Of a stretch of DNA of 64,000 nucleotides, positions 10,362 to 49,348 are shown in pieces. The stretch lies in IMG/VR virus record IMGVR_UViG_3300037805_000644, positions 158,940 through 222,939 of that record. One strand, written 5' to 3'. The notes under the pieces are model-generated. The model did not search any database. It was not told the DNA's origin and saw only the letters and a list, made by a program, of their open reading frames with translations. The number at the start of each line of letters is the position of its first letter. The stretch's first letter is position 1. A program made the position numbers and the translations under genes.

Positions 10362-10732
10362 GCGTTCTTCTCCTCGCGGATCTTCGCATCATAGGCGGCG
10401 GTGTCTCGACCCTTTGAGGTCGCCAACTTCTTGGCGTCTGACCAAGAGTCCACACGTTCCCCGCCTACATTGGGGGCCAGGGTCAAAGCAGGAGCATCTT
10501 TCAACTTCACCTTGCCCTTGGCGGTCAGCCGGCGGTTCTTTTCCCGCATCTGCTGCTTGATCTTCATGTTCTTACCAACCCAGTCGTCTCCTCGTTGGAG
10601 GAACGACACTTGTCCGACCACCCGCTTAGCAGGCTCGCCGCAGTCGCAGGGTTGGGGCTGGGTGCATTCGGACCGATCAACGCTCTTCTCGAACGTCTCG
10701 CCGCAAGGACACTTATAGCTGTAGAGGGGCAT
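10358..10732 (-). CDS. FmdB-family zinc-ribbon protein
   Basis: MPLYSYKCPCGETFE...PCDCG..AKRV. Confidence 0.8.
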   Translation of the reverse strand: MPLYSYKCPCGETFEKSVDRSECTQPQPCDCGEPAKRVVGQVSFLQRGDDWVGKNMKIKQQMREKNRRLTAKGKVKLKDAPALTLAPNVGGERVDSWSDAKKLATSKGRDTAAYDAKIREEKNA

Positions 10733-12413
10733 GGGTACTCCTTCCTTTCAGCTCAAGATACCGAGCTGCGAGGGTCCGAATCTCGACAGACGGGATGGTG
10801 TGTACAGTCCACACCTCACCGTTGATGAGCATATCGGAGAGATACCGAGGGTCAGGCGCCTCAGACCCACGCTTGTGGCGGGGTCGGGGGATGTCCCAAT
10901 CCAGGCCGAGAGCATGATCGAGCACTGCAAGGACATGCTTGCAAACCCCATGCTCATGCACAGGATCCTTGATCACGGGGAAGCTGGCCGTGCCCCGAGG
11001 CTTCCCATACAGGTAGCCGTTCTGCTTGGCCCAGTGCTCGGGCCCCTGCCAACGCCAGTAAGGGCAGTCGCAGGAAAGAAACACGTCAGCCTTGGACAGC
11101 CGTCGGGCATTGCCCTTGGTCTTGCCCTGAACCCGGACCCTGTAAGTACCGGAATTGCCGTTCACGTCGAAAAGCCACATCCCGTTGCGCTGGTCTACCT
11201 TCTTGAGCTTCCAGGTCAGGCCGGTCACCTTCTCCCGGATGCTGTCGTCCACACCCGACATGATGTCGGAGATGCGGAAAGCGAACCTCCGACCCTCTTT
11301 ATTTTGGAAATCGTGCCCCTCGGGGATGACCTTAGCGGACCCGGGGTTGTTCGTAACCTCACCGAAATCGTTGAAGGTTTTCATCCCGGGGTTCCGCTTC
11401 TTTTTGCGCACCCGCTCTTTGCGGTCCGTGGCCCGGTCGTATGCCTGCCCTGGGGGGTCTTTGCGGTCCACCCGCTCATACAGCATCTCTGCGGTGTGCA
11501 TCGCCTCTTGGTACCCTAGGGCCTTGTCCAGGTACCCGAAAAAGTAATCATCATCGATGACGGCCTCGTCGAAAAACTCCACCAAAGGCCGGCTCTGGTA
11601 CATGCCCCCCACCTGGAAAGTCACCCACCCTGTGAGCTGGGAGACGCCCATCACCACACCCCAAGCCTGAGTGGGGAGATGGTAAAACCCAACGGGGCGG
11701 AACAGCGCCTCAGCCTTCTTCTCGCCGGGCTTGTCTTTCCGGTTCTTCAACTTCTCGCGGTACTCGGTCCCCCGCTGCTTGAGAGTGCTGGCCCCCCCAG
11801 GCTTGCGCTCGAACCTCTCAGGCTTCTCCTTTCGCCTCTCCTGGTCCCGCTGGTAGGTCCCCTTGTTCTTGGCCCGGGCATACCACCGCTCCATGCGGCT
11901 GCGTACCTTGCCCCGGTTTTTCTGGTACCACTTCTGGAAGTACCGCTTGGCCTGGCCACGCTGTTCTTTCTGTCGGTCGGACCCTGGGTAAGGCTTGCCC
12001 TGGGCCGCGCCCATGCGTTGAAGTACCGACAGGATCTCCTCCTGGGTGGGCATGATGGGATCATAAAGCTGGGACTCCTCCTCGCTCTCCCCATACACGC
12101 CAGGTCGACGGGTGTTCATCCCTGGACCCGACTGGGCTGGAGAGCCCTTAGAGCCAGGGTGTTCACCCCCGGGCTCGCTTTGGGTGCGAGCCTTGTCCTT
12201 GTGGATGGACTTGTTGCCCTCACCTGTGCCGCTCGGGCCCGGGGTGTTGAAGTTGTGGGGGCCGCTCTTGGTCGTGTTGGTCCACTGAGGGCTAGGGAGC
12301 GCAGAAGGCTTCCTCTCATCCCTCCCCGGCACCGTGGGCTTGGTTCCCGGTGACGGATTCTTGACGACGGTACGGACCCCACTCAGGTCCTGGGAGCGGC
12401 TTGATGTCTTCAT
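10713..12413 (-). CDS. SWIM zinc-finger protein with a basic, low-complexity N-terminal region
   Basis: YRVRV...LSCDCPYW...VCKHVLAVL (CxC...CxH); C-terminal RTLAARY tag. Confidence 0.75.
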   Translation of the reverse strand: MKTSSRSQDLSGVRTVVKNPSPGTKPTVPGRDERKPSALPSPQWTNTTKSGPHNFNTPGPSGTGEGNKSIHKDKARTQSEPGGEHPGSKGSPAQSGPGMNTRRPGVYGESEEESQLYDPIMPTQEEILSVLQRMGAAQGKPYPGSDRQKEQRGQAKRYFQKWYQKNRGKVRSRMERWYARAKNKGTYQRDQERRKEKPERFERKPGGASTLKQRGTEYREKLKNRKDKPGEKKAEALFRPVGFYHLPTQAWGVVMGVSQLTGWVTFQVGGMYQSRPLVEFFDEAVIDDDYFFGYLDKALGYQEAMHTAEMLYERVDRKDPPGQAYDRATDRKERVRKKKRNPGMKTFNDFGEVTNNPGSAKVIPEGHDFQNKEGRRFAFRISDIMSGVDDSIREKVTGLTWKLKKVDQRNGMWLFDVNGNSGTYRVRVQGKTKGNARRLSKADVFLSCDCPYWRWQGPEHWAKQNGYLYGKPRGTASFPVIKDPVHEHGVCKHVLAVLDHALGLDWDIPRPRHKRGSEAPDPRYLSDMLINGEVWTVHTIPSVEIRTLAARYLELKGRSTHAPLQL

Positions 12414-12416
12414 CCG

Positions 12417-13367
12417 TTACTTTCCCAGGTGTTTCTTCACGATATTCTGGATGCCGTGATTGTGGCTGTGAGGCAACACGCAGATGCCAGGGGCCTTCGG
12501 GTCAGGCATCCCTTTCCAGTACACGGTGATGATCCGGGCCGTCCTCTTGGACGGGACAGCGAACACCAGGAAGAGGTTCCATTTCTTGAAAAGGAACTCA
12601 ATGGGCTCTCCCCGGCGGATGGTCATCATGGCGTGTTCGTACTCGTAACTCTTCTGACTTTTCCAGTCATTGAGGCTCTGGCCGAACTGTTTGAGGCCGA
12701 CGCGGATATCCGGGATGCTGATCCCCCGCAGGTCCATGCGGTACTGGGCGTGGCTTGTCAGCTCGATCTGCTTGAACAACCCAGCACCTTGCTCCTTGAG
12801 CGGCTTGTAAACCACTCGGGCCTCCGGGTTGCTCAGGGACTTGCCTTCCTCTACCTTCTCTTGGAGGACATCACGCACCCGGGGTGAGCGAACCTTATCC
12901 TCGATACGGTTGACGACATAGCAGGGACCCGCCTCGGTGGGCAGACCCAAGGCGGGCATGAGGTCCGCCTGCTTGCCCACCCAAGCCGAGGATACCCTCT
13001 GAGAGGCGCTTTCCGACTCGGAGTTCCGATCCATCCCCCCGCCGAAAGCGGGGGATAGGGTCTCCTCGACGAGCTGCTTTTCGGAGAGAGGGAGACGGGC
13101 CCCCAGATAGCTCTCACCCATCTTGACGAGAGCCAGGGCAGTGCGATCCAACACCTGCTCCAGGGCATCCATGCGCTCAGGGGCGGCGATGATAATGTCG
13201 CCAGCCACCTCGAACAGGTGCTCTTTCTGATCCGAAGAGGAGATTAGCTTGCCTGCCCTGTTTACCAGGTGGCGGAGTCGGTGGGTGTCCAAACGAGCCT
13301 GGGTCACACCCTCAGTGATGAGGGCCCAGGCTGCTTGGGAACTGGCGGTTTTGTCGGTCTTGCTCAC
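12417..13367 (-). CDS. protein with a C-terminal DUF4258/BECR-fold RNase-like domain
   Basis: GTG start at 13367 with SD GGAG; LTSHAQYRMDLRGI...LFLVF...IITVYW; internal tag RVSSAWVGKQA. Confidence 0.65.
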   Translation of the reverse strand: MSKTDKTASSQAAWALITEGVTQARLDTHRLRHLVNRAGKLISSSDQKEHLFEVAGDIIIAAPERMDALEQVLDRTALALVKMGESYLGARLPLSEKQLVEETLSPAFGGGMDRNSESESASQRVSSAWVGKQADLMPALGLPTEAGPCYVVNRIEDKVRSPRVRDVLQEKVEEGKSLSNPEARVVYKPLKEQGAGLFKQIELTSHAQYRMDLRGISIPDIRVGLKQFGQSLNDWKSQKSYEYEHAMMTIRRGEPIEFLFKKWNLFLVFAVPSKRTARIITVYWKGMPDPKAPGICVLPHSHNHGIQNIVKKHLGK

Positions 13368-13412
13368 AACGGTCTCCGATGCAGACACAGAAGTCCTCAC
13401 CCAGAGTCGCTG

Positions 13413-13426
13413 ATAGGCGGGCAACC
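13413..13426 (-). promoter_or_regulatory. putative late promoter motif
   Basis: Minus strand GGT-tgccc-GCCTAT, about 46 nt upstream of 13367. Confidence 0.6.
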
Positions 13427-13429
13427 GAA

Positions 13430-17257: not shown

Positions 17258-17433
17258 AGGTTTTTTACTCCTTGTCCTGTCGAGAGAACTACCCTTTATG
17301 AGGTAGATCGTTACCCCCTATCTCCACCAGCCCGGTACTGCGGCTATCCTCAACGGGTAAAGAGTCGGTGGCGACCTGCCTCTCGGTGGTTTCTGGGCTC
17401 GCTGTTTTACCTCGACGACTCAAAGGAGTTGCC

Positions 17434-20573: not shown

Positions 20574-21446
20574 TTAGCGGGTGACGGTGAGGCGGGCCAA
20601 CCCACGGGGGTTGTAGGCGCCGATACCCAGGTTCTCGAAGACCGAGAAACCGATGGTACGTGCCTTGGGGTCGTCGGCGCTGAGCACGGTCAGCTCGGTG
20701 CGGACCGGGATCCGACCGAAGTGCTCGGGCTCGCAGCACAGGTAGACCGTGCCGACGGGAACCAGGCGGCTCACGACGATCTGGGCACCGTAGATGACGC
20801 CCATGAGACCAGTCTTGAGCAGGGTGCCCTGGGACTCGATGTCCAAGATGTCACGACCGAACTTACGGATGTCCGCGTAGTCACGGGCGTTCATGTAGAC
20901 ACGAGCAACGCGGAGGTCCCAACGCTCGATGAGAGCGAAGGCATCAGCCAGGACCGCACCCGAGATGGGGGCGATGACCGGGATGTCCGGGTTGAGCTGA
21001 CCAGGCAGCGAGTCGAAGCCCGCAGTGGCGATGGAGTCGAGCACGGCAAAGACGCGCTCATCCTCGGCAGCCTGCACCTGGGCACGGGCCAGGTCCTGAG
21101 CACGCTCAATCAGATCGAAGCGGCGCTCCTTGATCTGGGTGAGCGGGATCTCCGGGTTCGAGGCAATCTCGAACAGGGGGAAGATCACACGACGAGGCTT
21201 GGTGATGGCCAGGATGTTCTGACCTTCCTCACCAATCACGAATGCGGTCACATCCGGGTCTTTGTCGTAGATCGGCAGGGCCCCGTCAGGAAGCTGCTCG
21301 ACCAGGAAGGTCTTGCGGCCGACTGCGGCGTAGTCACGCCGGGTACGGAGGGGCTGCGTCATACTGGCAGCGAGCTTGGCCCGTCCCTGGGGGGACTGGA
21401 TCAGCTCGCCGATGAGGCGTTGCTTGACGGCGTTTGTAACGGCCAT
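20574..21446 (-). CDS. major capsid protein (HK97 fold)
   Basis: GRAKLAASMTQPL, FEIASNPEI, AEDERVF, VPVGTVYL..EPE.FG, NPRGL. From memory this resembles Bxz1/E3-type myovirus MCPs. It follows the protease, scaffold and decoration genes and ends in a strong terminator. Confidence 0.9.
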   Translation of the reverse strand: MAVTNAVKQRLIGELIQSPQGRAKLAASMTQPLRTRRDYAAVGRKTFLVEQLPDGALPIYDKDPDVTAFVIGEEGQNILAITKPRRVIFPLFEIASNPEIPLTQIKERRFDLIERAQDLARAQVQAAEDERVFAVLDSIATAGFDSLPGQLNPDIPVIAPISGAVLADAFALIERWDLRVARVYMNARDYADIRKFGRDILDIESQGTLLKTGLMGVIYGAQIVVSRLVPVGTVYLCCEPEHFGRIPVRTELTVLSADDPKARTIGFSVFENLGIGAYNPRGLARLTVTR

Positions 21447-22404: not shown

Positions 22405-23889
22405 TCAGACGCCGAACACCTTGCTCACGTCGGGGGCGGACTTCCAGAGCTTTTCCAGCATATCCACCGAACCCGGGGCCGCCGAGGCGACGCGAGTCTG
22501 GTTCCCAAGGGCGGTGACGCCGTTGCTGGCCTGGCGGGGCTGAGGGGACAGCTCCAGCTCTTCACCGGCCGTGTGGCCAGGGAGACCGGCGGAGAAAATC
22601 TCCTCCAGCAGCTCTTCGTCGGCAGCGGAGAGGGACATGCTGCTGCCCCCACTCAGGCCCATGGGGTCATGGCCAGCCGTGTCGAACAGGTTGGCAGCCT
22701 TGTCGGCACCATCCTCGTCGTCGTCCTCGTCGCCGTCGTCAGTGGCCTTCTTGCCAGCTTCGACCGCGTCGTCGTCCTCATCCTCGTCGTCGCCTGCCTT
22801 CTTCTTCTTGAGGAAGTCGGGGAACTTGTCGTCCTTCTTGTCGTCCTTCTTGTCGTCCTTCTTGTCGTCCTTCTTGTCGCCCTTGTCCCACTGCTTCTTG
22901 AAAGCTTCGGGGACCTCACCGGCCAGGACCATCTCGCCACAGGCGCTCATCATCCCGACTTCATCGTCCATGAAGTCGTCAGCCATGCCCATCATCTCAT
23001 CCGAGGGGTCGAACATGGCGGTGATCAGCTCACCCGAGGTGACCACACCGTCAGAGTCGGTGTCCACGGCGGCGAAGAGCGCCTTCGATCCGGTCCAATC
23101 GTCGGCCAGGGCAAACCCGTCCTCACCACCACCATGGGTGGCGAAGTAGCTGGCAACTCGCCCCTGGAGGCTGGCGAAACGGGCCGAACCCTTCTTCTCG
23201 CCCTTGGCGGTGGAAGACGCCTCAGCACGCTCCTGCTCCTTCGGATCGTTCTGGCTGGCGGTGATCTGAGCCTTGAGGCCACGGATCTCGGAGGCCATGT
23301 GCTGCATCATGGACATCATGTCGTCGCCGGGGGCGCCAACATCGAGATCGTCATCCATGCCGAACATGTCGTCATCCATGCCGAACATCTCGTCGCCCAT
23401 GTCGTCCATGTCGTCGCCGAGGAACATGTCATCATCCATGGCCAGGAAGCCGCCACCGACGCGCTTGAGGCTGGCCGCAAGGTACGAGTTGGGCAGATCC
23501 ATCATGTCGAGGGCCTGCGACTCAACCAGATCCTGCGTCGCATTCTTGCCGAGCTGATGCTTGGCGAGAACGAGGCACTTGGCGGCCTTGCGCTGGATCC
23601 CAGCAGACAGCTTGGCATCCTTCTGAACCCGGGGGTTCCGCTTGTGCGCCGGGTGGTCACCATCCTCGGTGTCGTAGCCGGGAACTGCCGGGGGGTTACC
23701 CTCGGGGTACGGGCCCTGGTGGACATCCTCGGCCCAAGCCGAGGTGTCGCCCTTTTGGTACTTCTCGTAGGCAGGATCGGCCTGGTGGGCCGGGTGGCCC
23801 TGGTCTTCCTTGCCGTAACCGGGAACTGCGGGTGCGGCAGACGCCTTACGGTCCGTCTTGCTCCACGTCGTGCGAGTGCGATTGCTCAT
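22405..23889 (-). CDS. putative capsid scaffolding protein
   Basis: Start MSNRTR (SD GAGGAG); highly acidic and low-complexity; between protease and MCP; many K/R-x-A sites. Confidence 0.7.
   Translation of the reverse strand: MSNRTRTTWSKTDRKASAAPAVPGYGKEDQGHPAHQADPAYEKYQKGDTSAWAEDVHQGPYPEGNPPAVPGYDTEDGDHPAHKRNPRVQKDAKLSAGIQRKAAKCLVLAKHQLGKNATQDLVESQALDMMDLPNSYLAASLKRVGGGFLAMDDDMFLGDDMDDMGDEMFGMDDDMFGMDDDLDVGAPGDDMMSMMQHMASEIRGLKAQITASQNDPKEQERAEASSTAKGEKKGSARFASLQGRVASYFATHGGGEDGFALADDWTGSKALFAAVDTDSDGVVTSGELITAMFDPSDEMMGMADDFMDDEVGMMSACGEMVLAGEVPEAFKKQWDKGDKKDDKKDDKKDDKKDDKFPDFLKKKKAGDDEDEDDDAVEAGKKATDDGDEDDDEDGADKAANLFDTAGHDPMGLSGGSSMSLSAADEELLEEIFSAGLPGHTAGEELELSPQPRQASNGVTALGNQTRVASAAPGSVDMLEKLWKSAPDVSKVFGV
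22826..22879 (-). repeat. 12-bp tandem repeat (about 4.5 copies, DKKD)
   Basis: ttgtcgtccttc x4 plus a partial copy, in frame within the scaffold gene. Confidence 0.9.
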
Positions 23890-23920
23890 CGTGGTTCTCC
23901 TCTGGCGCTCTGCCAGGTCT

Positions 23921-33773: not shown

Positions 33774-36700
33774 ACTGGCTCCACCTTGAGGATCTTGACT
33801 TTGCGGGGATCGAACAGAGCCACCTCAGGGACACCGTCGACAAGGCCAGAGCCGTGGAAAACCACGCAATCATAGCCGTTCTTCCGGGCCTTGCGGGCCT
33901 GCTCTTTGCGGGCGGTGACCAAGACGTTCTGTGCCTTCACCATTACGGTGTACACCTTGGGTCGGTATTTCGCAGAGTCGAGGCCCAAGGTGTCCAGGGA
34001 GTCATAAACGTACTCGGGCAACCCAGTGCCCTGGCTGAACAGGGAGCCCCCAGCGGGGGGCGGCTCAACCTTACTGCCCAGAATGTATCCTGCAATGTCG
34101 TTCAGATCGTTGGGGTCCATGTCGCCCATGAGAGCGTCGATGTCCTCTCCGGTCGTGAGGTTGTTGGTGGCCATCCAGTGGTCCCACCCTTTCCCGTGCC
34201 CCAAGTCGAACATGCTTTGGAGTAGGCTCCCCCCGCCCTTGTTCAGCCTCGCCAGCTCAGCAATGATCGAGACGGGGAACCCAATGTTCCTGTTTGCATC
34301 GGCATACCGGACAGCGACCCGCTTTGAGGGGGTCAGGAAAATGCCCTTGCCGTAAAACTTGGACACCAGGTCATCCCGGGATTGCGCCATGTCGAAGGCC
34401 CGGAACGACCGGGTGGTGCCGTGGTAAAGGATCGTGCCCGCCCCCGACACAAGCCCTTCCAAGCCTTCCTGTTTGAGATCGATATTGGCAACACGGGTCA
34501 GGTACTGACTCGCCACACGGGCGGCGGCCTTTTTCCTGGCGCGGCCCTCGTCAAAGCGAAGCTTGAACAGCCTCACATCTTTCTTCTTGGTCTTGCCGTC
34601 CTTGTCAGGCTCGGTCTCGACCACCACCATCGGGTCACCCTTGGGTCCCTTCTTGAAATCGACGATGTAACCCTTGCTGTTGAGATATTTCCCGGTAAGA
34701 ACGGGGTCACCGAGGTTCAACGTGAACGACTTGGCTACCCGGGCTGCCGCCACTTTCTCATCACGGGACAGCCTCATGAGGGGCTTCCCATAAAGACCCG
34801 ACAGGCTCAGGGCTCGCTGCATCCGAAACTTCCCCATTTCGGACAGGCGTCCGGGAGCTGCCATGAAGGCAACGAAAGACTCCGCGAAATCCTCCCTCTC
34901 GTTGGTCTTGGCATACTCAGTCGGAACCTGGAGGGCTTCGAGAGCCTGGGCCACGGCACTATCATCTTGGGCGTAAGCAGCCACCTGCTCCTTGGTGAGT
35001 GTGGGGTGGGTGAAAGACTCCACCCCTGTTGCACCCAATGTGCTCTTCACCTGGCGAAACACTCGGTCCATTCTTCTCTGATAATCACTTTCCCCCGGGG
35101 AAGTCCCATAATCTTCGGACAGGAGTCTCACAGGATCGGATAGGAGTCGGTGCATGCGCACCCCACGATCTCGGTTCCAGCGGAGTTGTTTCGGCGTAAC
35201 AAAAGGGCCTCCTGCTAGAGGCTCATGCAGCCAGGCGTGGAACTTCATCCTGTCGAGCCCCCGAAGGCGGATACCCCGCAGGTTACCCTCGGATTCCTCC
35301 AACAGGCCCCAGAACCTCATACGTTCCGGGAGGGAGACCCCTCGGATGTCCTTTTCGGTCTGTGCATCGACCTTCTCTGCCTCCTGGACAGGAATCCACC
35401 CGGAGTCCCACTCCTTGCGGGCTTCGGGGTGCATGAGGGTCAGGTGAAAGTGATGACCCACCTCATGGAGAAAGATCTCGTGGATCCACTCCCGGAGCAT
35501 CCGCCCATCCACCCTTCCCGCAGCCGCAGTGAGGAGCTGGATACGCCCCCGGTCGCCATACCACCCGTGAGCAGTCTCTCCCTCAGAGCTGTGTCGGATG
35601 ATGATGGTGTGTACCGTCTCGTGGAGCAGAGGGGTTACACCCCTCTGCTTGAACAGGCCCACCACATAATCCACACCGGATAGGAACTTTCGGATCGTGG
35701 GTTCGGGAAGGCGGTCGGGGTTCTGAACGGAAAAACCCTGGTATTTGAAACGCCGCACTCCCGCCTGCCTGGCAAAGCTATTGAGCTGATCAGCATAAGA
35801 ATCAAGGGCAGTGAGGAGCACCTGAACCCGGTAAGTCAGGGTCACCCCCTCTCCCACCACAAGGCTGGTGTGGAATTTGACAGACTTGAAAAGGTCTCCT
35901 GCCGCATCCCGAACACGCCTACGGATGCTGTAATCGATGGCATCCCGTCCAAGGGATCGAAGAACCCAGCCGCCAAAAGGCCGCCCAAAATGCAGGGGGT
36001 GTGCTCCAGGCTGGCTGAGGGCGTGGGGGAACCCATCCTCTTGCAGTTTCTCCCGCAGCTTTCCCTCAGGGACGCGGCTCAGGCCCTTGAACCGTGCGTG
36101 AATCTTACTGAAAGCAACCAGCTCTTTGGAGATCTCTTTCCAATCAGCATCCGCCTGTGCCGGACCTTTCCAGACATAGCGAAGAGCCTCCCGTGCCACC
36201 TTTGCCGATCCAGCCTTGAGCTTGTGGGTCTTGGGCATCCCCCAGATCTCGATCTCGTCGAAAGTCCAGCTCCCCGTGGGGGTGACGCCACCGAACTCAG
36301 CCTCCAGGCCATCCAGGTAATCCAGGGTGGTGTGGGGGCGGTAAACCGTATAGCTGTCCCCTACCTCAATGCCCAAGTCTTGTACGGCGCTCTTGAGGCG
36401 GTCCCGCAGCTCTGCCATCCGGTGGCTGAACCGGATAGGCAGGATGGCCACACGACGCTCTTCGGCCGGGTGGGTGAAGTAATCGAGACCTTCAAGGTTC
36501 GCAGTGACCGGCTCACGCAGCTCCTCCGACACCACCCGCTGACAGGTGGAGACGAACTCAGCCTCCCTGCCCTTGACGTTCCCGACATAGAGCAGCGTGA
36601 TGTGGGGCGGCGACTTATCGTTGCCGGATTGCTTCTTGGGAAACTGATCGGCCAGGTGGCGGGGGAGAGGGATGAACAGACCTGTCCACTCGGTGGAGTC

Positions 36701-36808
36701 ACCGGTGGTCTTGCCGTCACTGGGTCCGGCGGACCTGTCCGCCCAGGCCGCAGCTACCTGCTTGACCGCCAAACGCCTTACCTGTGCTCGAAGGATGGGG
36801 TGATCCAC
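33770..36808 (-). CDS. 1012-aa polyvalent protein: 2H phosphoesterase, zincin, SH3-like barrel, ART-PolyVal-like
   Basis: PHITLLY and YRPHTTLDY; HEVGH...YAKTNEREDFAE; GDPVLTGKY..KGYI; LYHGT..F..F, GKGIFLT, GYDCV, EVALFDP. ATGA overlap with the 2346-aa gene. Confidence 0.85.
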   Translation of the reverse strand: MDHPILRAQVRRLAVKQVAAAWADRSAGPSDGKTTGDSTEWTGLFIPLPRHLADQFPKKQSGNDKSPPHITLLYVGNVKGREAEFVSTCQRVVSEELREPVTANLEGLDYFTHPAEERRVAILPIRFSHRMAELRDRLKSAVQDLGIEVGDSYTVYRPHTTLDYLDGLEAEFGGVTPTGSWTFDEIEIWGMPKTHKLKAGSAKVAREALRYVWKGPAQADADWKEISKELVAFSKIHARFKGLSRVPEGKLREKLQEDGFPHALSQPGAHPLHFGRPFGGWVLRSLGRDAIDYSIRRRVRDAAGDLFKSVKFHTSLVVGEGVTLTYRVQVLLTALDSYADQLNSFARQAGVRRFKYQGFSVQNPDRLPEPTIRKFLSGVDYVVGLFKQRGVTPLLHETVHTIIIRHSSEGETAHGWYGDRGRIQLLTAAAGRVDGRMLREWIHEIFLHEVGHHFHLTLMHPEARKEWDSGWIPVQEAEKVDAQTEKDIRGVSLPERMRFWGLLEESEGNLRGIRLRGLDRMKFHAWLHEPLAGGPFVTPKQLRWNRDRGVRMHRLLSDPVRLLSEDYGTSPGESDYQRRMDRVFRQVKSTLGATGVESFTHPTLTKEQVAAYAQDDSAVAQALEALQVPTEYAKTNEREDFAESFVAFMAAPGRLSEMGKFRMQRALSLSGLYGKPLMRLSRDEKVAAARVAKSFTLNLGDPVLTGKYLNSKGYIVDFKKGPKGDPMVVVETEPDKDGKTKKKDVRLFKLRFDEGRARKKAAARVASQYLTRVANIDLKQEGLEGLVSGAGTILYHGTTRSFRAFDMAQSRDDLVSKFYGKGIFLTPSKRVAVRYADANRNIGFPVSIIAELARLNKGGGSLLQSMFDLGHGKGWDHWMATNNLTTGEDIDALMGDMDPNDLNDIAGYILGSKVEPPPAGGSLFSQGTGLPEYVYDSLDTLGLDSAKYRPKVYTVMVKAQNVLVTARKEQARKARKNGYDCVVFHGSGLVDGVPEVALFDPRKVKILKVEPV

Positions 36809-36845: not shown

Positions 36846-36859
36846 ATAGGCTGATCACA
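36846..36859 (-). promoter_or_regulatory. putative late promoter motif within an inverted repeat
   Basis: Minus strand TGT-gatca-GCCTAT, about 38 nt upstream of 36808; part of the CAGCCTATACCC/GGGTATAGGCTG inverted repeat (36823-36853). Confidence 0.55.
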
Positions 36860-38810
36860 GCACTGCGGGCTTGAAACCCTTGAGCCGGGCCTCCAGGCTC
36901 GCAAGCCTGGAGGACATCTCTTGCCACTCATCCCGCAGCTTACCCTCAGTGCTTGCCAGGGCAGCCTTCTTGTGGGGGATGTCGGACTCAAGCTTGGACT
37001 GGAGGTCTCGGTCGAGGTACCCGTCGGAGGACAGAGCCTCGGAGGCTGTCTCTCGAATGGCCTCCTTGAGGAGGACCTTGAAGTTCTCCTGCACCTCCGG
37101 CGTGATGCCCTTGGAGGCGAAGCGGGACATGCCCTCTTCTTTCGGCTTGGCGTAGTTGAGCCCCAAGACCTCAGCAGCCCTCTGGGTGGCGTCCGTGGAC
37201 TCTGCCAGGGCATCTCCCACGCGGCTGTAAACCGAGCGCAGCACCTCATTGAAGGTGGCGTCCTGGAGGGTGAACGTGTCCCGCTCCAGCTTCTCCCGGA
37301 CCGTGTCTGCGTCCAGGTTGAGCAGGTCCAGGATGGTCTCGATATCCAACGAGCCCTTCTGGTACAGGTTGAACAGGGCGTCAAAGGTCTCCTGGTTGTC
37401 CCGCAAGGCAAGGCGGGTGAACGACAGGCGGGGATGCACCACAACCTCAAGGCCGTCTTCGTCAACCTCCATGAAGCCCATACGGCGACACATCGGCTCC
37501 AGAAGCTGCTTGTCCACGAAATCCTGGAGGAGTTCCCGCAAGAGCATGTACCGGACGTTGATCACCTCCAGGTGGATGCGGTCGCCGCTGTAGCTCGACT
37601 CACCGGAGAGCAAAGACTCTGTCACACCGAGGCCCGCATAGAGCTGGCGGTCTGTGAGATCGTACTCACCCGACAGGTCCAGGAGGCGGTTGTCTGCACC
37701 CATCTCCTCCCAGTTGACCTGGAAGTTGGTGATGACGCTGTGGTCAGGATCCTGGAGGGCCAGGTCTACCTGGTCCCGTAGCTCCTCGGTGTCGTTGGCG
37801 TCCATATCCTCAGCCCAGATGAGCCGGTAAGGGGTCATGTGGCGAGAGGCGATGGAGGTCTGGGCCTGCCGGAGCTTGTCTCGGTACACCAGGGTGCGGA
37901 GGCACCGCTGGAGGATCGACTTGCCCCGAGGCTCGTACTGGCTTTTCTTACGGGCCATGAAATGACAAAAGCTGCCGGCATTCGGGTTCGTGTTGAGAGG
38001 GATCTCCTCGCCTCGGAGAACGTAATCAACGACCTCAACAGGCATCGTCTCCACAACCTCGCGGGCCCTCATGTCGCCCTGAGCGGCGCGGTCGATAACG
38101 TCCTTGGTCAGGGAGTCTGGGATGAGGCTTAGGAGCACCTGATCTGTGAAAGGGAAAGCCTCCATCACGACCTGCTCAGGAGGAAGCACCCGAAGGGCTG
38201 TCCAGCCCTGGTAGTTCTCCTTGACCCACTGAACCATGCGTTTCTGTGCGTCGGGGTACTCCCGCTCTTCTTCCTTCAAAGAGCCGTCGGCTGCGATTTC
38301 GCGGTACGTCTCGTGCGTCACGCTCCGAGGCATGTCAGGGCTTGTGTCCTCGGCGAAAATGTTCACCTCACCGATGAGGAAATACTCGTGGACAATCTCC
38401 AATAGGCGGTGAAGCAAGCCCACCTCCCGAGCCCACCGCTCAACGAACCGCATGGCGGCATCCGCCATTTTCTTGTTCTTGGTCCGGGGCTTGCGGAATC
38501 GAAGCTTGCTCAGTGGCAGCTCGCCATGGAGATCGATGGCCTGGCCTACGAAAGGATCATTGTCGTAGAAAAAGCGGAAATAGTTCCGCATCTCGGCAGT
38601 GGACTGGGGCAGCTCCAGGAAGTCCGGGCTCAGCTCAGGGCTGTAAAAGTTACCGCCCGAGCCCGTCATCGTCCCCCCCGCCTGGGGGAACGCCATCTTC
38701 ATCATCTTTGAGGTGCCTGTGACCGTGCGGCGAGGCTTACCCGTCTTGACGTTAGCCCTCTCGGGGAGAGTCGCCACTCGTACGGTGTGTTTGGGATTGT
38801 TCTTCTTCAT
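36855..38810 (-). CDS. portal protein
   Basis: FFYDNDPFVGQAIDLH, EYFLIGEV, RGKSILQRC..LVYRDKLRQAQ; downstream of the terminase. Confidence 0.85.
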   Translation of the reverse strand: MKKNNPKHTVRVATLPERANVKTGKPRRTVTGTSKMMKMAFPQAGGTMTGSGGNFYSPELSPDFLELPQSTAEMRNYFRFFYDNDPFVGQAIDLHGELPLSKLRFRKPRTKNKKMADAAMRFVERWAREVGLLHRLLEIVHEYFLIGEVNIFAEDTSPDMPRSVTHETYREIAADGSLKEEEREYPDAQKRMVQWVKENYQGWTALRVLPPEQVVMEAFPFTDQVLLSLIPDSLTKDVIDRAAQGDMRAREVVETMPVEVVDYVLRGEEIPLNTNPNAGSFCHFMARKKSQYEPRGKSILQRCLRTLVYRDKLRQAQTSIASRHMTPYRLIWAEDMDANDTEELRDQVDLALQDPDHSVITNFQVNWEEMGADNRLLDLSGEYDLTDRQLYAGLGVTESLLSGESSYSGDRIHLEVINVRYMLLRELLQDFVDKQLLEPMCRRMGFMEVDEDGLEVVVHPRLSFTRLALRDNQETFDALFNLYQKGSLDIETILDLLNLDADTVREKLERDTFTLQDATFNEVLRSVYSRVGDALAESTDATQRAAEVLGLNYAKPKEEGMSRFASKGITPEVQENFKVLLKEAIRETASEALSSDGYLDRDLQSKLESDIPHKKAALASTEGKLRDEWQEMSSRLASLEARLKGFKPAVL

Positions 38811-39187
38811 TGCTTCCACCCCAACTGTGTCAGGAGTCGTTGATCCGCCCTCTTGCCTGCCCTCTTGGCGGCTCTGGCGTCCTCACGAGCCTTCTCCCGA
38901 GCGGCACGAGCTGCCGGGACTTTGGTGTTCTCGGGAGCCAGGTCGGGATCTGAGCCCTTTCCGGGATTCAGGTACCCCAGTGAGTTAACCTCACCGAGCA
39001 TCTTCCTGAGCACCCTCTCCTGGGCCTTAGCGGCACCCTTGGTTGAGGTACTAGCCTTGCGGTCACGGGACACTCGGCGGCACACGTCGAGTGCTCGATC
39101 CAAGCCCCGCCGGACATCTGCCAGATGCCCGTGAAGGTCTCGATCAGCCTCGCTCTCTGCAAGAGCAGCCTTGGTCCGGCTCGCCAT
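38807..39187 (-). CDS. hypothetical basic protein
   Basis: Overlaps both flanking genes (translational coupling). Confidence 0.6.
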   Translation of the reverse strand: MASRTKAALAESEADRDLHGHLADVRRGLDRALDVCRRVSRDRKASTSTKGAAKAQERVLRKMLGEVNSLGYLNPGKGSDPDLAPENTKVPAARAAREKAREDARAAKRAGKRADQRLLTQLGWKQ

Positions 39188-42916: not shown

Positions 42917-44865
42917 CAGCCATCCTCCCGGGTGTTCACGTAAAGGCCATCAAACAGCAGCTCACCCAGCTTCTCCACAGTGGGCGTGTCGTTGAGAGAC
43001 ACGTCCATACTCGCCTGGAGCCCGAACTCGGACACGAGACTCGTGTGGCGGCTTGTGAACAGCGAGCCGGTGATCTCAGCATCTGATGCGTTGGACAGCT
43101 TGATGGCCTCATCCTGGATGACCTTGAGGCGGTCGGGGCCCAGGTCGGATGCCTTGATCAGAGGCTTGTTGTACACCGAGCAGTGGCCGGTGCCGTCAAG
43201 CATGGCCTGGCGGTGGACACAAGAACCACAACGGCTCATCGCCAGGACACGCCGCACCTGGTTGGTGCGGTGCGTTGCAGACGCTGCCTTGCAGCCCTGG
43301 GTGCCTGTTGTGGAGGCGTAAGCGGCAGCGTCGACATAGACGTTGCCTGCCAGCCCCTCATGCCTTGCACGCAGCTCTCGCAGCTCAGGGGCGGCTTCCC
43401 GAAGCACCTCACTGCTCCAGCGGGCGTTGAGGAGCTGATCGAGGTCTCCCCCCATCCAGCCTTCATTCATGGCCTTGCGGGTCCAGCTCGCCAACCGCTG
43501 GAACTCAGCGGTTTTGGTGAGGACCCCCTGGCTGGCCTGACGCTCCATCTGAGCGTTCAGGGTGTGGCTCACACCAGCACCCTCGTAAGTGCCTTCCTTG
43601 GGGGCGTTGACCATCTCACCGGCCCGGATGAGCATGTCATCCGTCTGGAGCTTCCGCAGATCGAACACCTGCTCGGCGCTCAGCGACCCTGCGGACATCC
43701 ACTTGGCCAGCTTCCCTAGTGCCTTGGCCCTGCGAGCCTGGGAACCGTCTCGGCTGGGCAGCGTGGGCAGAGCCTTGGGAGCCGCTGCATGGAACTGTGC
43801 AAGGGCCTCCTTGGCGGTGATGGTGTCCGCAGGTCGGACCTCCACCGGCTTCGGTCGCTGGAGGGGGACCTCCGCAGCGGCAGGGCCTGTTTGGAAAGCA
43901 GCACGCAGTGCAGCACGAGGATCCCCGGCCATGTCCACGGAGTACCCGGCGGCACGAAGCCTCGGAGCATAGTGGTTGCGGGCCCCTTTCCAGGGAACCT
44001 CGGAGACAGCGATCATGCCAAGCTTGGTGCCTACGGTCGGGTCATCCGTGATGACGTACCGGGCCCCTCGGGCTTTCCGCTTGATGTCCTGAACCCACTT
44101 CCCGTTCTTGATTCCGGGGAAAGCACTGGCACGGACAAACACGTTGCCCACCAACCCGGCATCCTGCTTGAGGTGCGAGACCACCCCTCGGGTGTGAGCG
44201 GCCTTATCCCCCAGAGAGGCAACCAGATCCCGCTTGATCTCAGCCACGGACTTCCCAAAGTGGGCGTCCCGGACAGCCTTCTGGGCAGCCCGGCGGACGG
44301 CGCTCATGTCCTCTGCCGCCAGCTTGGGTCCAGGGGTTGCGGGCTGAGGGCTCTTGTTCATCCGCTGATGATAACGCTCGGCAGCCAGGTCCTTGGTGGG
44401 TACCCGGTTAACCCCGTCAGTGCGGCGACCGAAGCCCCAGGCACCTTCCAGCTCCTCAAGCCCCTTGTCGTCAGGGCCCACAGGCAAGCGGTCAGGGTCC
44501 TGGCCTTGAGTGGGGTCAAGCCAAGACAGATCCACGGCGGCGGCATCCCTCTCGAAAAACTCGCCGAGCTGGAGGCCCGAGGAGAAATCGTTCATCAGGG
44601 CAGCCTCGTCGAGAGGGGCCTGTACAGAGGCCATCAGGCCCCCTGGGAGGCTCTGCATCCCGTTGGATCCGGCACTGCTCCCCGGAGGGGGTCCCGGGGT
44701 TGCCCCGGGCTGAGCCGGGCGGTCTTTCCCCTGGGTCTGCTCGAAATGGTGACCATCGAGCCCATAGTTGGAGCCCTGGCCCCACTGAAAATCATCCCCG
44801 TCTGGGGTGCCGGAGTCGGCCAGGATCTCTGCGGCCCAATCGAGGGCCTTCTTCTTGTCGCTCAT
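42916..44865 (-). CDS. hypothetical head-associated protein with a Cys cluster
   Basis: 649 aa; CGSCVH...CSVYNK; K/R-x-A sites (KLAAE, KTAE). Confidence 0.6.
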   Translation of the reverse strand: MSDKKKALDWAAEILADSGTPDGDDFQWGQGSNYGLDGHHFEQTQGKDRPAQPGATPGPPPGSSAGSNGMQSLPGGLMASVQAPLDEAALMNDFSSGLQLGEFFERDAAAVDLSWLDPTQGQDPDRLPVGPDDKGLEELEGAWGFGRRTDGVNRVPTKDLAAERYHQRMNKSPQPATPGPKLAAEDMSAVRRAAQKAVRDAHFGKSVAEIKRDLVASLGDKAAHTRGVVSHLKQDAGLVGNVFVRASAFPGIKNGKWVQDIKRKARGARYVITDDPTVGTKLGMIAVSEVPWKGARNHYAPRLRAAGYSVDMAGDPRAALRAAFQTGPAAAEVPLQRPKPVEVRPADTITAKEALAQFHAAAPKALPTLPSRDGSQARRAKALGKLAKWMSAGSLSAEQVFDLRKLQTDDMLIRAGEMVNAPKEGTYEGAGVSHTLNAQMERQASQGVLTKTAEFQRLASWTRKAMNEGWMGGDLDQLLNARWSSEVLREAAPELRELRARHEGLAGNVYVDAAAYASTTGTQGCKAASATHRTNQVRRVLAMSRCGSCVHRQAMLDGTGHCSVYNKPLIKASDLGPDRLKVIQDEAIKLSNASDAEITGSLFTSRHTSLVSEFGLQASMDVSLNDTPTVEKLGELLFDGLYVNTREDG

Positions 44866-45560
44866 GCCGTTCTCCCTGAGTAGCGTGCCGCCAGGCGTGC
44901 CGCCTGGTCCCGAATGGTTCGGGCAGCCAGCTTGGGCATACCGCTGTCGCCGTCGCCCTTCATGCCATTGCCCCCGCCGGAGTCCCCGGACTCTTCCTCA
45001 CCCTCGGCCCACTCCTCGGGGTCCTCTCGGATCTCTTCCACATCGTCCATGATCTCCTTGACCTCCTCACGGGACCGAGGGTCGCCGCCGGAGTCAGTGA
45101 CATCAGGGTGCCAGTGGACTGCGTTGATCTCGTCGTAGACGGTGTCTGTGATCGCAGACAGGGCCTCACAGCAGTTCATGAGCATTTTCCTCATGTCCTT
45201 GATGGGCATGATGTAGCCCTTACCGCCGAGGTTCCCGTCCGGGCTGACCCTCTGAGACTTGATCTTGGTGAAGGTGGCGTAAGCACTCTGGGAGTGGCCC
45301 AAGGCCATGAGGGATGCCCTCAGGACCTTGGCCAGAGGCTCCAGGTTCTTGGCGTTGAACTCGTAGTCGGGGTCGATCTCTCGGGCGGAGGCACCAGGGG
45401 GGTTCCAGGCCCACTCGTTGTGGTCCCCTCCCCTGTCCTTAATGAAGCGAACCTCACCGGCCATCTTCGAGGTAGGCGCACCCGCCCCCTGACGCTTCTG
45501 GAACGCCTGAGCCACCCGCTCGGTGGCCTGGGGGTCTTTCTGTGTGGTCCTCTTGGACAT
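44862..45560 (-). CDS. tagged late protein
   Basis: N-terminal RVAQAFQKRQG and C-terminal RLAARYSGRTA* tags. Confidence 0.7.
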   Translation of the reverse strand: MSKRTTQKDPQATERVAQAFQKRQGAGAPTSKMAGEVRFIKDRGGDHNEWAWNPPGASAREIDPDYEFNAKNLEPLAKVLRASLMALGHSQSAYATFTKIKSQRVSPDGNLGGKGYIMPIKDMRKMLMNCCEALSAITDTVYDEINAVHWHPDVTDSGGDPRSREEVKEIMDDVEEIREDPEEWAEGEEESGDSGGGNGMKGDGDSGMPKLAARTIRDQAARLAARYSGRTA

Positions 45561-47487: not shown

Positions 47488-47489
47488 GT

Positions 47490-48173: not shown

Positions 48174-48183
48174 GGTTTACCCC

Positions 48184-49002
48184 TTAACGCCAGACTGAGG
48201 ACTGGTACTTGGTGCGGATCTTGCCCCGCTTGAGGGCTTCCTCCAGAGCGCCACTCTTCATCTTCTTAACGGCTTCCTCGTTGGCTTTGAGCCACTTGAA
48301 AAACTTCCGTGCGCCCGCAGGGGCCGTGGATACCAGCTTGGTGTAGTAAGAATCACCGCTGTGCCCATAACCCCTCAACTGCTCATCGGTGTACCCGTTG
48401 TTCAGGGTAATGGAGAACCCCGTCCACTTGGCGTCGATGAAAAACTCATCCTTGACCGCGATCTCGATGGGGGCGTAGTCCACGGGCTCCACGTTCAGGT
48501 AAAACACCTCGTCCACCCGAGGCATCTGCCGCTCATCAAAGCTATGCCGGAACCAGTCAGGGATGATGTCCCCCTTACCTGCCGCGATGTCTTTCTCCCA
48601 GTCCTTGAAAGCCTTGTCGATGGCCTTTCGGAGAGCTTGGGAAGCTTTCTCCGGGGTCATTGAAGCCGTGGGCTTCCAATCCCTCTTCAAGTTCTCCAGC
48701 ATCAGGTGATTGGAGTGGATCGGGTTCAGCTTCGAGCCGATATCAAAAGTGTACCTCTTGAGCCTCTTCCTGCCCTTCTGGGGCAGCTCCTCGATCACAG
48801 CGTAAGATTGGGGGTGCCCTTTCCAACGGATGCGGACCTTGTCCCCGACCAGGATCTCATCCCAGCCAGACCGGGAATCGATCCCACCCACACCGGCGGC
48901 CTTACCTGGAGCGTGCTTCTTGAGGAGAGGCACCAGGTGCTTGCGGGTGCTGGGCACCTCAGTGGCGAGCTTTTGGAGCTTGCTGTACAGGTTGGTGGGC
49001 AT
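48184..49002 (-). CDS. hypothetical late protein with an N-terminal leader helix
   Basis: Start MPTNL (SD AAGGAGG); LYSKLQKLA..PSTRKHLVPLLKKHA..KAA. Confidence 0.65.
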   Translation of the reverse strand: MPTNLYSKLQKLATEVPSTRKHLVPLLKKHAPGKAAGVGGIDSRSGWDEILVGDKVRIRWKGHPQSYAVIEELPQKGRKRLKRYTFDIGSKLNPIHSNHLMLENLKRDWKPTASMTPEKASQALRKAIDKAFKDWEKDIAAGKGDIIPDWFRHSFDERQMPRVDEVFYLNVEPVDYAPIEIAVKDEFFIDAKWTGFSITLNNGYTDEQLRGYGHSGDSYYTKLVSTAPAGARKFFKWLKANEEAVKKMKSGALEEALKRGKIRTKYQSSVWR

Positions 49003-49039
49003 GGGCCCCTCCTTTGTCTCTCTTGGGTTGAGGCTCATA

Positions 49040-49348
49040 TCACCAAACCCCGGTGGTCTCGTAACCACGTTTTTCAAACCAGTCCTTGAGGGCGACCATC
49101 GCCTCTCGATTGGCGGACCACAGGGTCACACTGTCGAAATTTTCCCGGATACCGAGATCAGGGATGGTGGGCACGCTCTCCATGGCCACCCTGCCGTCCC
49201 GTTGGCTGCGGAGCAGCCCTGGGACATAACGGTGATCACGGACGCCGTACAGGACTGAGAAACGGTGCTCTGCGTGCGCCAGCCGGCGAACCCACTTACG
49301 AGCCACCCTTCTGGCCATCACCACACGTCTCTCATTCTGGTCGGACAT
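49040..49348 (-). CDS. small tagged late protein
   Basis: RRVARKWVRRLA tag near the N-terminus. Confidence 0.7.
   Translation of the reverse strand: MSDQNERRVVMARRVARKWVRRLAHAEHRFSVLYGVRDHRYVPGLLRSQRDGRVAMESVPTIPDLGIRENFDSVTLWSANREAMVALKDWFEKRGYETTGVW

Follow-up and report, generated by a model that had tools for sequence, protein, structure and literature searches.

A portable short motif on unrelated proteins of uncultivated huge phages as a candidate head-targeting tag

The 64,000-nucleotide stretch of viral DNA analysed here (the window) encodes late proteins of very different kinds that carry a similar short peptide, which raises the question of what this peptide does on otherwise unrelated proteins. 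An earlier note on this DNA had read it as an amphipathic docking helix followed by a fixed protease cut site, and every instance that it listed was present in the sequence at the gene named.

Enrichment and conservation of the tag

The tag spans ~10-13 residues with the consensus R-[VIL]-A-[AS/x]-[RK]-[YWF]-[LVM]-x-[KR]. It is basic (mean net charge +1.9) and amphipathic, with positions 2, 3, 6, 7 and 10 forming a hydrophobic face and positions 1, 5 and 9 a basic stripe. The pattern had been defined after seeing the data, and the window proteome is rich in Ala and Arg.

Tag enrichment is real and far above chance. In the late proteins of the window (12,542 aa), the core R[VIL]A..[YWF] occurred 12 times against 1.18 expected, a count reached in 0 of 2000 shuffles, and the full 11-aa pattern 5 times against 0.04 expected from shuffles. 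The remaining window proteins (8,222 aa) held one core (0.71 expected from shuffles) and no full pattern. Six-frame translation gave 13 core matches in called coding frames versus 6 in all other frames combined, and all 5 full-pattern matches lay in coding frames. When a PSSM trained on relatives only was applied to the window at a threshold score of at least 10, it returned 12 matches against 0.96 expected, all within 12417-49348, and none in the 50-64 kb replication genes, where the top score was 8.8. These tests confirm the enrichment in late over other window proteins and the absence from the replication genes that the earlier note had described. The post hoc pattern and the Ala/Arg-rich proteome would favour chance, a compositional artefact or the remnant of one homologous domain, but such an origin is very improbable given that all three tests contradict it, that relatives with widely differing GC contents retain the tag, and that its flanks are unrelated and variable between proteins.

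Across relatives with GC contents of 0.32-0.64, R1, [VIL]2, A3 and the aromatic residue at position 6 are strictly conserved; the AT-rich subclade has few canonical tags. Scoring of relatives with the PSSM found 179 tags in 90,549 aa of six tagged families (~2 per 1000 aa), 5 in ~115,000 aa of replication and transcription families, which equals the shuffle false-positive rate, and 0 in ~82,600 aa of the capsid, upstream-of-capsid, protease, portal (31 orthologues), terminase and 84-aa families, counts across orthologues being non-independent events. Terminal tags occurred in 17 clusters without sequence relation to one another, and the claim that non-homologous proteins of a large clade share the tag, including two polyvalent proteins beside the portal, was thus upheld. 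The clade consists of uncultivated huge phages, with no cultured member found in the phage collection, and phage G and Tunturi_5, its closest cultured relatives, had no tag in the head-gene regions examined. Codons at synonymous sites vary from tag to tag in the window, in favour of peptide-level selection.

Tags at protein ends and module junctions

Tags were located at N-termini, C-termini or module junctions of unrelated proteins (Table 1). The 2346-aa and 1012-aa polyvalent proteins, encoded beside the portal gene, are multi-domain enzyme arrays (Topo IB, GNAT, PRTase-like, 2H, ART-PolyVal) whose homology blocks start or stop at tags. In the 2346-aa protein, blocks begin at the residue-295 tag, which lies 31 aa upstream of where Pfam Topoisom_I begins in all relatives tested and reads K-T or A-A instead of R-V in some of them. 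Blocks end at residues 1442-1444, at the degenerate residue-1441 tag, and in AT-rich relatives the preceding D-L-S-L-N-[YF]-K block forms the C-terminal end of small stand-alone proteins that stop in or just past a tag. The residue-1848 tag opens a C-terminal block of ~480 aa (borders at residues 1839-1862). In the 1012-aa protein, the N-terminal variant stands before a 2_5_RNA_ligase2 domain (residues 64-188) and is R-V-A-x-R-W in relatives, and the residue-764 tag precedes the ART-PolyVal module (residues 789-839).

Table 1. Tags, candidate cleavage-type sites and head genes, by position in the window
Feature	Position	Strand	Remarks
C-terminal tag variant T-L-A-A-R-Y…, 566-aa protein (gene 10713-12413)	10743..10775	-	PSSM only 6.1 in window
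Tag R-V-S-S-A-W…, gene 12417-13532	12966..12998	-	PSSM 12.6; junction of conserved N-domain and DUF4258
Major capsid protein, 290 aa, untagged, possible receptor	20574..21446	-	phrog_2522, E = 1.4e-50
R-V-A-S, scaffold-like protein, candidate maturation site	22483..22494	-	26 residues from C-terminus
Weak tag-like element, scaffold-like protein (ORF 22405-24078)	23128..23160	-	PSSM 9.1; at least 10 in only 5/36 orthologues
Head maturation protease candidate, 485 aa	23921..25378	-	phrog_18299, E = 4.6e-14
Tag-like K-V-A-S-S-F insert, protease N-terminal region	25250..25282	-	Only in window and closest relative, L095
R-A-A-A near protease N-terminus	25295..25306	-	Window version of conserved W-x-x-[IV]-R-[VT]-A-[SAG] site; 26/36 orthologues
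Internal tag, 206-aa protein (gene 25381-26001)	25666..25698	-	PSSM 20.0; border of N-terminal domain and Cys-rich module
Degenerate tag R-I-A-A-R-V…, residue 1848, 2346-aa protein	28200..28232	-	PSSM 10.9
Degenerate tag K-V-A-A…, residue 1441, 2346-aa protein	29421..29453	-	No aromatic; after conserved D-L-S-L-N-[YF]-K block
Tag, residue 851, 2346-aa protein	31191..31223	-	PSSM 23.7; in linker with additional R-V-A triplets, e.g. 31140-31151
Tag, residue 295, 2346-aa protein	32859..32891	-	PSSM 24.9; hybrid with conserved topoisomerase IB module leader
N-terminal tag (residue 10), 2346-aa protein	33714..33746	-	PSSM 10.3; directly precedes DUF5661 (residues 35-77)
Tag, residue 764, 1012-aa protein	34487..34519	-	PSSM 15.6; second R-V-A at +9
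Tag, residue 690, 1012-aa protein	34709..34741	-	K-V-A-A just before; block borders
N-terminal tag variant Q-V-A-A-A-W…, 1012-aa protein	36728..36760	-	PSSM 13.1; before 2H phosphoesterase module
Portal protein, untagged	36855..38819	-	phrog_16240; polyvalent genes come directly after
C-terminal tag, 232-aa protein (gene 44862-45560)	44865..44897	-	Abuts stop codon; AlphaFold helix 214-230
Candidate cleavage-type site K-L-A-A, 232-aa protein	44922..44933	-	12/22 orthologues: K-[TLR]-A-[SA]
Candidate cleavage-type site K-M-A-G, start of conserved core, 232-aa protein	45456..45467	-	21/22 orthologues: [KR][TVM]A-G-E-V-R-F
N-terminal tag, 232-aa protein (gene 44862-45560)	45486..45518	-	PSSM 15.6
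N-terminal tag, 102-aa protein (gene 49040-49348)	49277..49309	-	PSSM 18.7

Among the smaller proteins, N- and C-terminal positions swap between orthologues within one family: those of the 232-aa protein carry the tag at the N-end, the C-end, both or neither. Scores of at least 10 were reached in 12/17 orthologues of the 566-aa protein, mostly C-terminally, and in 15/27 of the 102-aa protein, and the tag is present in 23/29 orthologues of the 206-aa protein. Gene splits and fusions among relatives have boundaries that coincide with tags. The module of the 206-aa protein is fused into larger proteins of ~1,060-1,270 aa in four relatives, and the N-domain that precedes DUF4258 (residues 258-339) in gene 12417-13532 is in relatives a separate ~130-aa protein with a tag at its end; this ORF as listed starts too far upstream, as homologues begin near residue ~55. 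By sequence, then, the tag has the properties of a portable short linear motif that non-homologous proteins share.

AlphaFold modeled the tag as an isolated helix between linkers with pLDDT<50. The 232-aa protein was predicted to have an N-terminal helix at 10-23 followed by such a linker at 27-57, and an acidic one at 195-215 leading into the C-terminal helix. At residue 295 of the 2346-aa protein the model was a low-confidence helix continuing into the N-terminal sheet, and in the 102-aa alignment the tag continues directly into the conserved domain. In these two cases, where the tag runs straight into a folded domain, it could be partly structural.

The 2346-aa and 1012-aa proteins match the polyvalent proteins of phages and conjugative elements in Iyer et al. 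2017, which in the available passages (PMC5512222) are arrays of disparate enzymes encoded next to the portal. Those passages propose release by embedded metallopeptidases and mention no shared inter-module or terminal peptide, and the word 'linker' is absent from the text; here, by contrast with the systems described in these passages, the same peptide is also found on single-domain proteins. With this proposed autoprocessing and with HExxH motifs visible in both proteins, tags could be processing sites of zincin-like metallopeptidase modules, leaving the prohead protease uninvolved. We consider this improbable, since a Pfam search detected no peptidase domain in the polyvalent proteins, many small tagged proteins are encoded elsewhere without a peptidase module, and a related short motif is present in the scaffold and protease.

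A candidate cleavage motif in the scaffold and protease

A fixed [KR]-x-[AGS] cut site, as proposed for +9 to +11 of the tag, did not hold up. The triplet starts at +8/+9 in only 54 of 188 tags (~29%), position 11 carries nearly zero information in the tag alignment, and in 31 C-terminal tags the protein ends 3-12 residues past the aromatic residue; late proteins showed no significant excess of bare [KR]-x-[AGS] (z = 1.0). What survives of the suggested K/R-x-A specificity is a narrower motif, [RK][TV]A[SAG], which was found 65 times in the protease family (8.2 expected), 36 times in the scaffold family (5.4 expected) and 31 times in the 232-aa family (1.7 expected). It forms conserved columns at canonical maturation positions, 26 residues before the scaffold C-terminus and near protease residue ~25, and also flanks the 232-aa core on either side, where K-L-A-A separates core and acidic linker from the C-terminal tag. 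In 15/64 cases overall, versus 9% in control windows, a distinct cleavage-type site stood between the tag and the core, and such sites were common only in the 232-aa family (10/13).

The scaffold-like protein is very acidic (pI 4.4) and Met/Phe-rich; its ORF as listed starts too far upstream, with homologues beginning near residue ~64. Its R-V-A-S site is [RK][TV]A[SA] in 18/32 orthologues, with near-variants in most others, and is followed by a variable linker and a conserved C-terminal segment (22408-22458). The protease candidate is 30% identical to phage G gp19, has invariant His142 (24953-24955) and Ser193 (24800-24802), and had no sequence match in Pfam, NCBIfam or PDB. Its R-T-A-S-S-D at about residue 401 is embedded in a conserved block rather than in a linker.

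By analogy, the scaffold and protease sites resemble herpesvirus Ala↓Ser maturation sites, since both have P1 Ala and a P1' residue that is Ser or otherwise small. The assemblin M-site lies a few tens of residues from the scaffold C-terminus and its cleavage frees scaffold from capsid protein (PMC4498786), much as R-V-A-S here lies upstream of a conserved terminal segment. They differ in the Arg/Lys at P3 and Thr/Val at P2 of the candidate motif, and the candidate protease and the scaffold are unfused.

The tag opens with the same [RK]-[TV]-A triplet, which is conserved in the scaffold and protease; 46% of tags have A or S at position 4, and tags sit at module junctions, often with tandem R-V-A triplets. 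All three points would fit a motif that serves only as a longer protease site, [RK]-[TV]-A-[SA], separating modules and trimming termini with no docking. We find this unlikely: at the 31 C-terminal tags, cutting would release just a tiny peptide, the scaffold and protease sites have no aromatic and basic extension, and the spacing of basic (1-5-9) and hydrophobic (2-3-6-7) positions together with AlphaFold points to a helix, an unusual state for a substrate.

Head targeting as the favoured reading

The reading that we modestly favour, from sequence comparison and structure models, is a portable head-targeting tag whose role would be like that of the capsid targeting sequence (CTS) on T4 internal proteins, to which it has no sequence relation. 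The tag would be added to either protein end, or left at the junctions of fused modules, and would attach to a conserved partner within the prohead during assembly, the candidates being the acidic scaffold and the capsid protein. The latter is unusually conserved (83-96% identity in relatives) and matches PDB 6wkk (phage G gp27; E = 8e-62); its RVARVY at residue 179 belongs to a highly conserved segment of the fold and is not a tag. Bound proteins would be enclosed in the head and later ejected with the DNA, and cleavage by the prohead protease probably falls between the Ala of [RK]-[TV]-A and a following [SAG], which would free cargo and scaffold at maturation. The docking-helix part of the original proposal is supported indirectly, because the tag is portable at ends and junctions, shifts between ends, coincides with gene splits and fusions, is predicted as an isolated helix on low-confidence linkers and varies in synonymous codons. 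The opposite charges of acidic scaffold and basic tags are a further point in favour of head targeting, and the domains of tagged proteins (ART-PolyVal, 2H phosphoesterase, Topo IB, GNAT, DUF4258, HAD) are typical of injected effectors.

In T4, the CTS is a short peptide on internal proteins IPI-III and Alt that presumably docks onto the scaffold core and that gp21 removes at maturation, with Alt processed at both termini (PMC9026906). The likeness lies in a short peptide common to otherwise unrelated proteins, which are head-internal in T4 and candidates for the head here, and the two-end processing of Alt matches the two-ended architecture of the 232-aa family. The two differ in that the CTS occupies the N-terminus and finishes with the gp21 motif, where the cut follows Glu. 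The tag is basic, predicted to be helical and placed at N-termini, C-termini or internal junctions, and the candidate cut motif would put Ala at P1. Encapsulin cargo-loading peptides and the coat-binding C-terminal domains of P22 and 80alpha scaffolds also tether proteins inside an HK97-fold shell and function when transplanted; they too are short terminal peptides or helices, of different sequence. Since scaffolds in this clade end in a conserved segment of their own that differs from the tag, the tag may bind elsewhere.

Similar basic amphipathic helices at the extreme C-terminus target bacterial proteins to the membrane. The tag, with its interfacial aromatic and often extreme C-terminal position, could likewise act after injection or in the cytoplasm, recruiting modules to one shared host or phage hub, for example the membrane, DNA or some host protein, and some tagged genes in the relative LR745208 are far from head genes. 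This alternative is also doubtful, since strict conservation of R1, [VIL]2, A3 and aromatic 6 argues for a specific protein partner rather than lipid or DNA, the opening triplet is common to the tag and the scaffold/protease motif, and tags cluster at the head module. Taken by sequence, a tag on many unrelated huge-phage proteins most likely marks loading into the phage head. In LR745208, 4 of 9 strong tags fall at the head module, in 4% of the genome, and the 2H module, encoded 55 kb from the head genes, has retained two tags.

Counts and placement of the tag peptide

Late proteins of this phage had been proposed in an earlier note to share a short amphipathic tag, with the core R-[VIL]-A-x-x-[YWF], and all of the instances listed there were found in the sequence. 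The proposed enrichment in late proteins was also borne out, with 12 matches to the core R[VIL]A..[YWF] vs 1.18 expected and five to the 11-residue pattern vs 0.04 expected, while the remaining window proteins contained one core match vs 0.71 expected. Of the core matches in a six-frame translation, 13 fell in coding frames and the other frames together had 6; full matches were all coding. Because the tags differ in their codons at synonymous sites, selection acts on the peptide, and a DNA-level repeat was rejected on the same codon differences.

Relatives were gathered with portal, clamp-loader and capsid-protein queries, yielding 173 loci with GC of 0.32-0.64 on contigs of up to 618 kb, and the core was enriched in most of their portal loci. 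A scoring matrix (PSSM) built from the relatives' instances only recovered 12 window sites at a score of at least 10 (0.96 expected), all within 12417-49348. Relatives' proteins were assigned by best window homologue to families, which are named by the start coordinate of the window ORF. Tags were present in 38 of 50 polyvalent proteins (93 tags), 23 of 29 proteins of the 25381 family and 15 of 22 of the 44862 family, to which a 232-aa protein belongs, as well as in three families that were not among the PSSM training loci, namely 10713 (12/17), 12417 (14/23) and 49040 (15/27); orthologues in these counts are not independent. Together the six tagged families hold 179 tags in 90,549 aa, summed over relatives. 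Replication genes had been described as free of tags, and the relatives agree, since their replication and transcription families contained 5 in ~115,000 aa, which equals the shuffle false-positive rate. No tag was found in ~82,600 aa of the relatives' capsid protein, its upstream protein, protease, portal, terminase and 84-aa family. Three elements were set aside as doubtful or as not being tags: RVARVY in the capsid protein, K-I-A-x-D-F in a 192-aa family and R-V-A-V-R-Y in the ART module.

Four positions of the tag logo are set by the search pattern itself. Beyond these, A/S is preferred at -2, -1 and 4, R/K at 5, L/V/M/Q at 7 and K/R at 9 (42%), with almost no signal at position 11, and the tag has a helical periodicity of basic residues at 1-5-9 and hydrophobic residues at 2-3-6-7(-10). 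With 18 orthologues, AlphaFold modeled the two tags of the 232-aa protein as helices 10-23 and 214-230, parted from the helical core by low-confidence linkers (27-57 and 195-215). A Foldseek comparison of this model with the PDB and viral models returned no match at E<=0.001, and weak small-terminase matches (E 0.3-1.5) were judged not credible. Besides the polyvalent proteins, 17 mutually unrelated clusters have tags at a terminus; those at the C-terminus stop 3-12 residues (mode 5) past the aromatic residue, and members of the 44862 family have the tag at either end, at both ends or not at all. In the AT-rich relatives L005, L008 and L018, the genes after the portal contain few canonical tags, and some proteins of this subclade end within the tag, while in others Leu replaces the aromatic residue.

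By analogy, the tag is best read as a system like the capsid targeting sequence of T4, in which a docking helix would retain cargo inside the prohead until its release by a protease that has Ala at P1. As with T4-type sequences, a short peptide is common to non-homologous proteins (the 17 clusters), although a location inside the head is assumed here. The T4-type sequence is a propeptide at the N-terminus, 10-19 residues long and closed by a protease motif that is cut after Glu, whereas the tags are N-terminal, C-terminal or internal and their logo contains no x-x-E element. Encapsulin cargo-loading peptides are also terminal, on cargo encoded with a shell that has neither portal nor terminase; the shell here is formed by a phage capsid protein accompanied by portal, terminase and protease, and the likeness is functional only. 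Alternatively, the tag could be a post-injection targeting helix. Its amphipathic pattern resembles membrane-targeting helices of the MinD/FtsA type, but those are C-terminal and conserve amphipathicity with loose sequence, whereas the tags are also N-terminal or internal and were recovered out of sample by the PSSM, with four positions fixed by the pattern.

Polyvalent proteins and module borders

Pfam domains in the 1012-aa protein were 2_5_RNA_ligase2 (2H phosphoesterase) and ART-PolyVal, and those in the 2346-aa protein were DUF5661, PRTase-like, Topoisom_I (Topo IB) and GNAT; relatives' counterparts additionally contain PolyA_pol and HAD. Since these giant proteins carry arrays of disparate domains, they are polyvalent proteins in the sense of PMC5512222 (Iyer 2017), with several biochemically disparate domains per polypeptide in a phage context beside portal and terminase packaging genes. 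An embedded zincin-like metallopeptidase is common in that class, not obligatory. HExxH motifs lie near residue 448 of the 1012-aa protein and near residues 1310 and 1741 of the 2346-aa protein, and these motifs, which have no Pfam peptidase match, suggest embedded zincin-like peptidase modules.

Homology blocks of the 2346-aa protein start at ~295 and ~1848 and end at ~1443, each border falling at a tag or degenerate tag. The block ending at 1443 corresponds in AT-rich relatives to the C-terminus of separate small proteins, which stop within or just past the tag. The pre-Topo IB tag, where the polyvalent gene begins in three relatives, is a hybrid with a Topo-specific leader and was modeled by AlphaFold as a low-confidence helix continuing into the first strands. 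Most relatives encode the conserved N-domain of gene 12417 as a ~130-aa protein with a tag at its end, and in the window a DUF4258 domain is fused behind it. Such junctions are where the tag might serve as a metallopeptidase autoprocessing site (PMC5512222), a rival explanation that has the HExxH motifs on its side and has to account as well for tags on separate small proteins.

The 485-kb relative LR745208 was scanned whole, in eleven pieces, and contained 17 sites at a score of at least 10 (3.8 expected); nine of these score about 13 or higher, and four of the nine sit within 19 kb at head genes. Its portal-adjacent protein consists of HAD, tag, Topo IB and C-terminal tag in that order, and the 2H module is encoded apart from it, at a distance of 55 kb, as a 497-aa protein that has two tags. 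This distant yet tagged module indicates that the tag travels with the module, not the locus. The tagged 2H phosphoesterase protein L182:11195-12688 (LR745208 347195-348688) has a weak Pfam match to anti-CBASS Acb1 (E = 0.003), a hint that 2H modules of the clade may degrade cyclic-nucleotide defence signals. At the nucleotide level, 24 kb searched against phage records had no match, and the sole finds of protein searches were this unannotated relative, Tunturi_5 and phage G. The tag was not found in the head-gene regions examined of Tunturi_5 or phage G, and the published phage G proteomics is therefore not transferable.

A candidate release site in scaffold and protease

The earlier note had coupled the tag to a [KR]-x-A cut site. 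In late proteins bare [KR].[AGS] was not enriched (z = 1.0), while [KR].A was (z = 5.3). A [KR].[AGS] triplet begins at +8 or +9 after the core in 54 of 188 tags, compared to 5.5 expected per offset, making it a soft feature that is not required. A separate cut site after every tag was rejected as a general rule, as the tag-core site is common only in the 44862 family.

A shorter motif, [KR][VIL]A[SA], occurred 23 times in late proteins vs 5.2 expected, and 3 times elsewhere vs 2.6 expected. When [RK][TV]A[SAG] without the aromatic residue was counted in relatives, the protease family contained 65 (8.2 expected), the scaffold 36 (5.4 expected) and the 44862 family 31 (1.7 expected), and counts were at or below expectation in the capsid protein, portal, terminase and replication families. 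These high counts, in which orthologues are not independent of one another, are due to conserved alignment columns, located at protease residue ~25 (26/36), on either flank of the 44862 core (21/22 and 12/22) and, as [RK][TV]A[SA], 26 residues from the scaffold C-terminus (18 of 32 strictly, with near-variants in most others). The scaffold column is followed by a variable linker and then a conserved terminal segment, which is kept even in AT-rich relatives. Another protease motif site, at ~401, lies within a conserved block. The tag opens with the same triplet as [RK][TV]A[SAG], a feature that would also fit the rival explanation of the tag as purely a cleavage site; its helical periodicity extends past this triplet.

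The scaffold motif, with Ala at P1 and Ser or a small residue at P1' near the C-terminus, looks like an assemblin-type maturation site. The herpesvirus M-site is an Ala-Ser a few tens of residues before the scaffold C-terminus (PMC4498786), and the candidate scaffold site, proposed from sequence only, parallels it in position. The enzyme is a candidate head maturation protease on the basis of one PHROG label and the invariant His142 and Ser193, which are 51 residues apart; the family had no match in Pfam (E<=5, ten orthologues), NCBIfam or PDB sequences. Residues 193-242 contain an invariant Cys cluster (C196, C203, C206, C217, C242) right after the candidate catalytic Ser193, and the cluster is common to phage G gp19. 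The scaffold is strongly acidic (pI 4.4), the tags basic (mean +1.9). K-K-D-D repeats and M-D-D-D-M-F-G repeats (Asp/Met/Phe) are also present in the scaffold.

Returning to the docking helix, we consider it possible, with somewhat less than even confidence, that one position-independent peptide for cargo loading, together with an assemblin-like Ala-Ser site for release, serves an entire uncultivated clade of huge phages (140-618 kb genomes, phage G-like capsid). In that case the full set of head-packaged, injected effectors would be readable from the sequence by itself, and adding ~12 residues at either end could load any protein into the clade's heads. Injected proteins of huge phages are largely unknown because such phages are uncultivated, and a loading signal would permit their listing from sequence only; here the list would include ADP-ribosyltransferase, 2H phosphoesterase (weakly Acb1-like), topoisomerase IB, acetyltransferase, toxin-like and RNA-repair modules. 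A loading signal would also explain how modules can pass from giant polyvalent proteins to single genes, or the other way, with delivery kept, and would offer a small handle for protein loading into phage heads. If scaffold and protease both have a site of the Ala-Ser type, the known phage-herpesvirus maturation kinship would extend to substrate specificity. Phage-head targeting peptides are already known (PMC9026906). In the literature searched, outside subscription journals, no description was found of this motif and its sequence class, of its placement at both protein ends and at polyvalent-protein junctions, or of its clade.

Gene order and neighboring genes

The window, which forms the final 64 kb of IMGVR_UViG_3300037805_000644 (222,939 bp), has a GC content of ~61%, and nearly all of its genes are on the minus strand.

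Features of the window in minus-strand order (descending coordinates), with three further genes at the end
Feature	Position	Strand	Remarks
Replication/transcription genes	49.4-64 kb	-	sigma factor, NusG-like, clamp loader, primase-like, nucleases
Genes without known function	41-49 kb	-
Large terminase	39445-41397	-
84-aa and 129-aa ORFs	between terminase and portal
Portal	36855-38819	-
Giant protein, 1012 aa	33770-36808	-	downstream of portal
Giant protein, 2346 aa	26733-33773	-	after 1012-aa protein
Two small conserved proteins	between giant proteins and protease	-
Candidate head maturation protease	23921-25378	-	PHROG label
Very acidic scaffold-like protein	22405-24078	-	longest ORF; after protease
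Conserved 239-aa protein	between scaffold and major capsid protein	-
Major capsid protein	20574-21446	-
DNA repair exonuclease	17368-18933	+	phrog_704
Gene 12417	12417-13532	-	longest ORF
tRNA nucleotidyltransferase	1014-2189	+	stand-alone

The capsid protein, a match to gp27 of phage G (PDB 6wkk, E = 8e-62; 38% identity), is the clade's most conserved protein, at 83-96% identity, while portal, terminase and protease encoded on those contigs reach 46-65%, among relatives with GC of 0.32 to 0.64 and contigs up to 618 kb. It had 533 related stretches in the viral collection. Longest-ORF starts of gene 12417 and the scaffold overlap the genes upstream, and homologues place the true starts near residue ~55 and at Met, residue 64, respectively. 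The exonuclease gene lies on the plus strand amid the minus-strand late genes. The tRNA nucleotidyltransferase gene is likewise on the plus strand. In relatives L002, L004, L019 and L027, a PolyA_pol domain is found inside the tagged polyvalent protein, and the giant protein of L030 is the best homologue of the tRNA nucleotidyltransferase gene.
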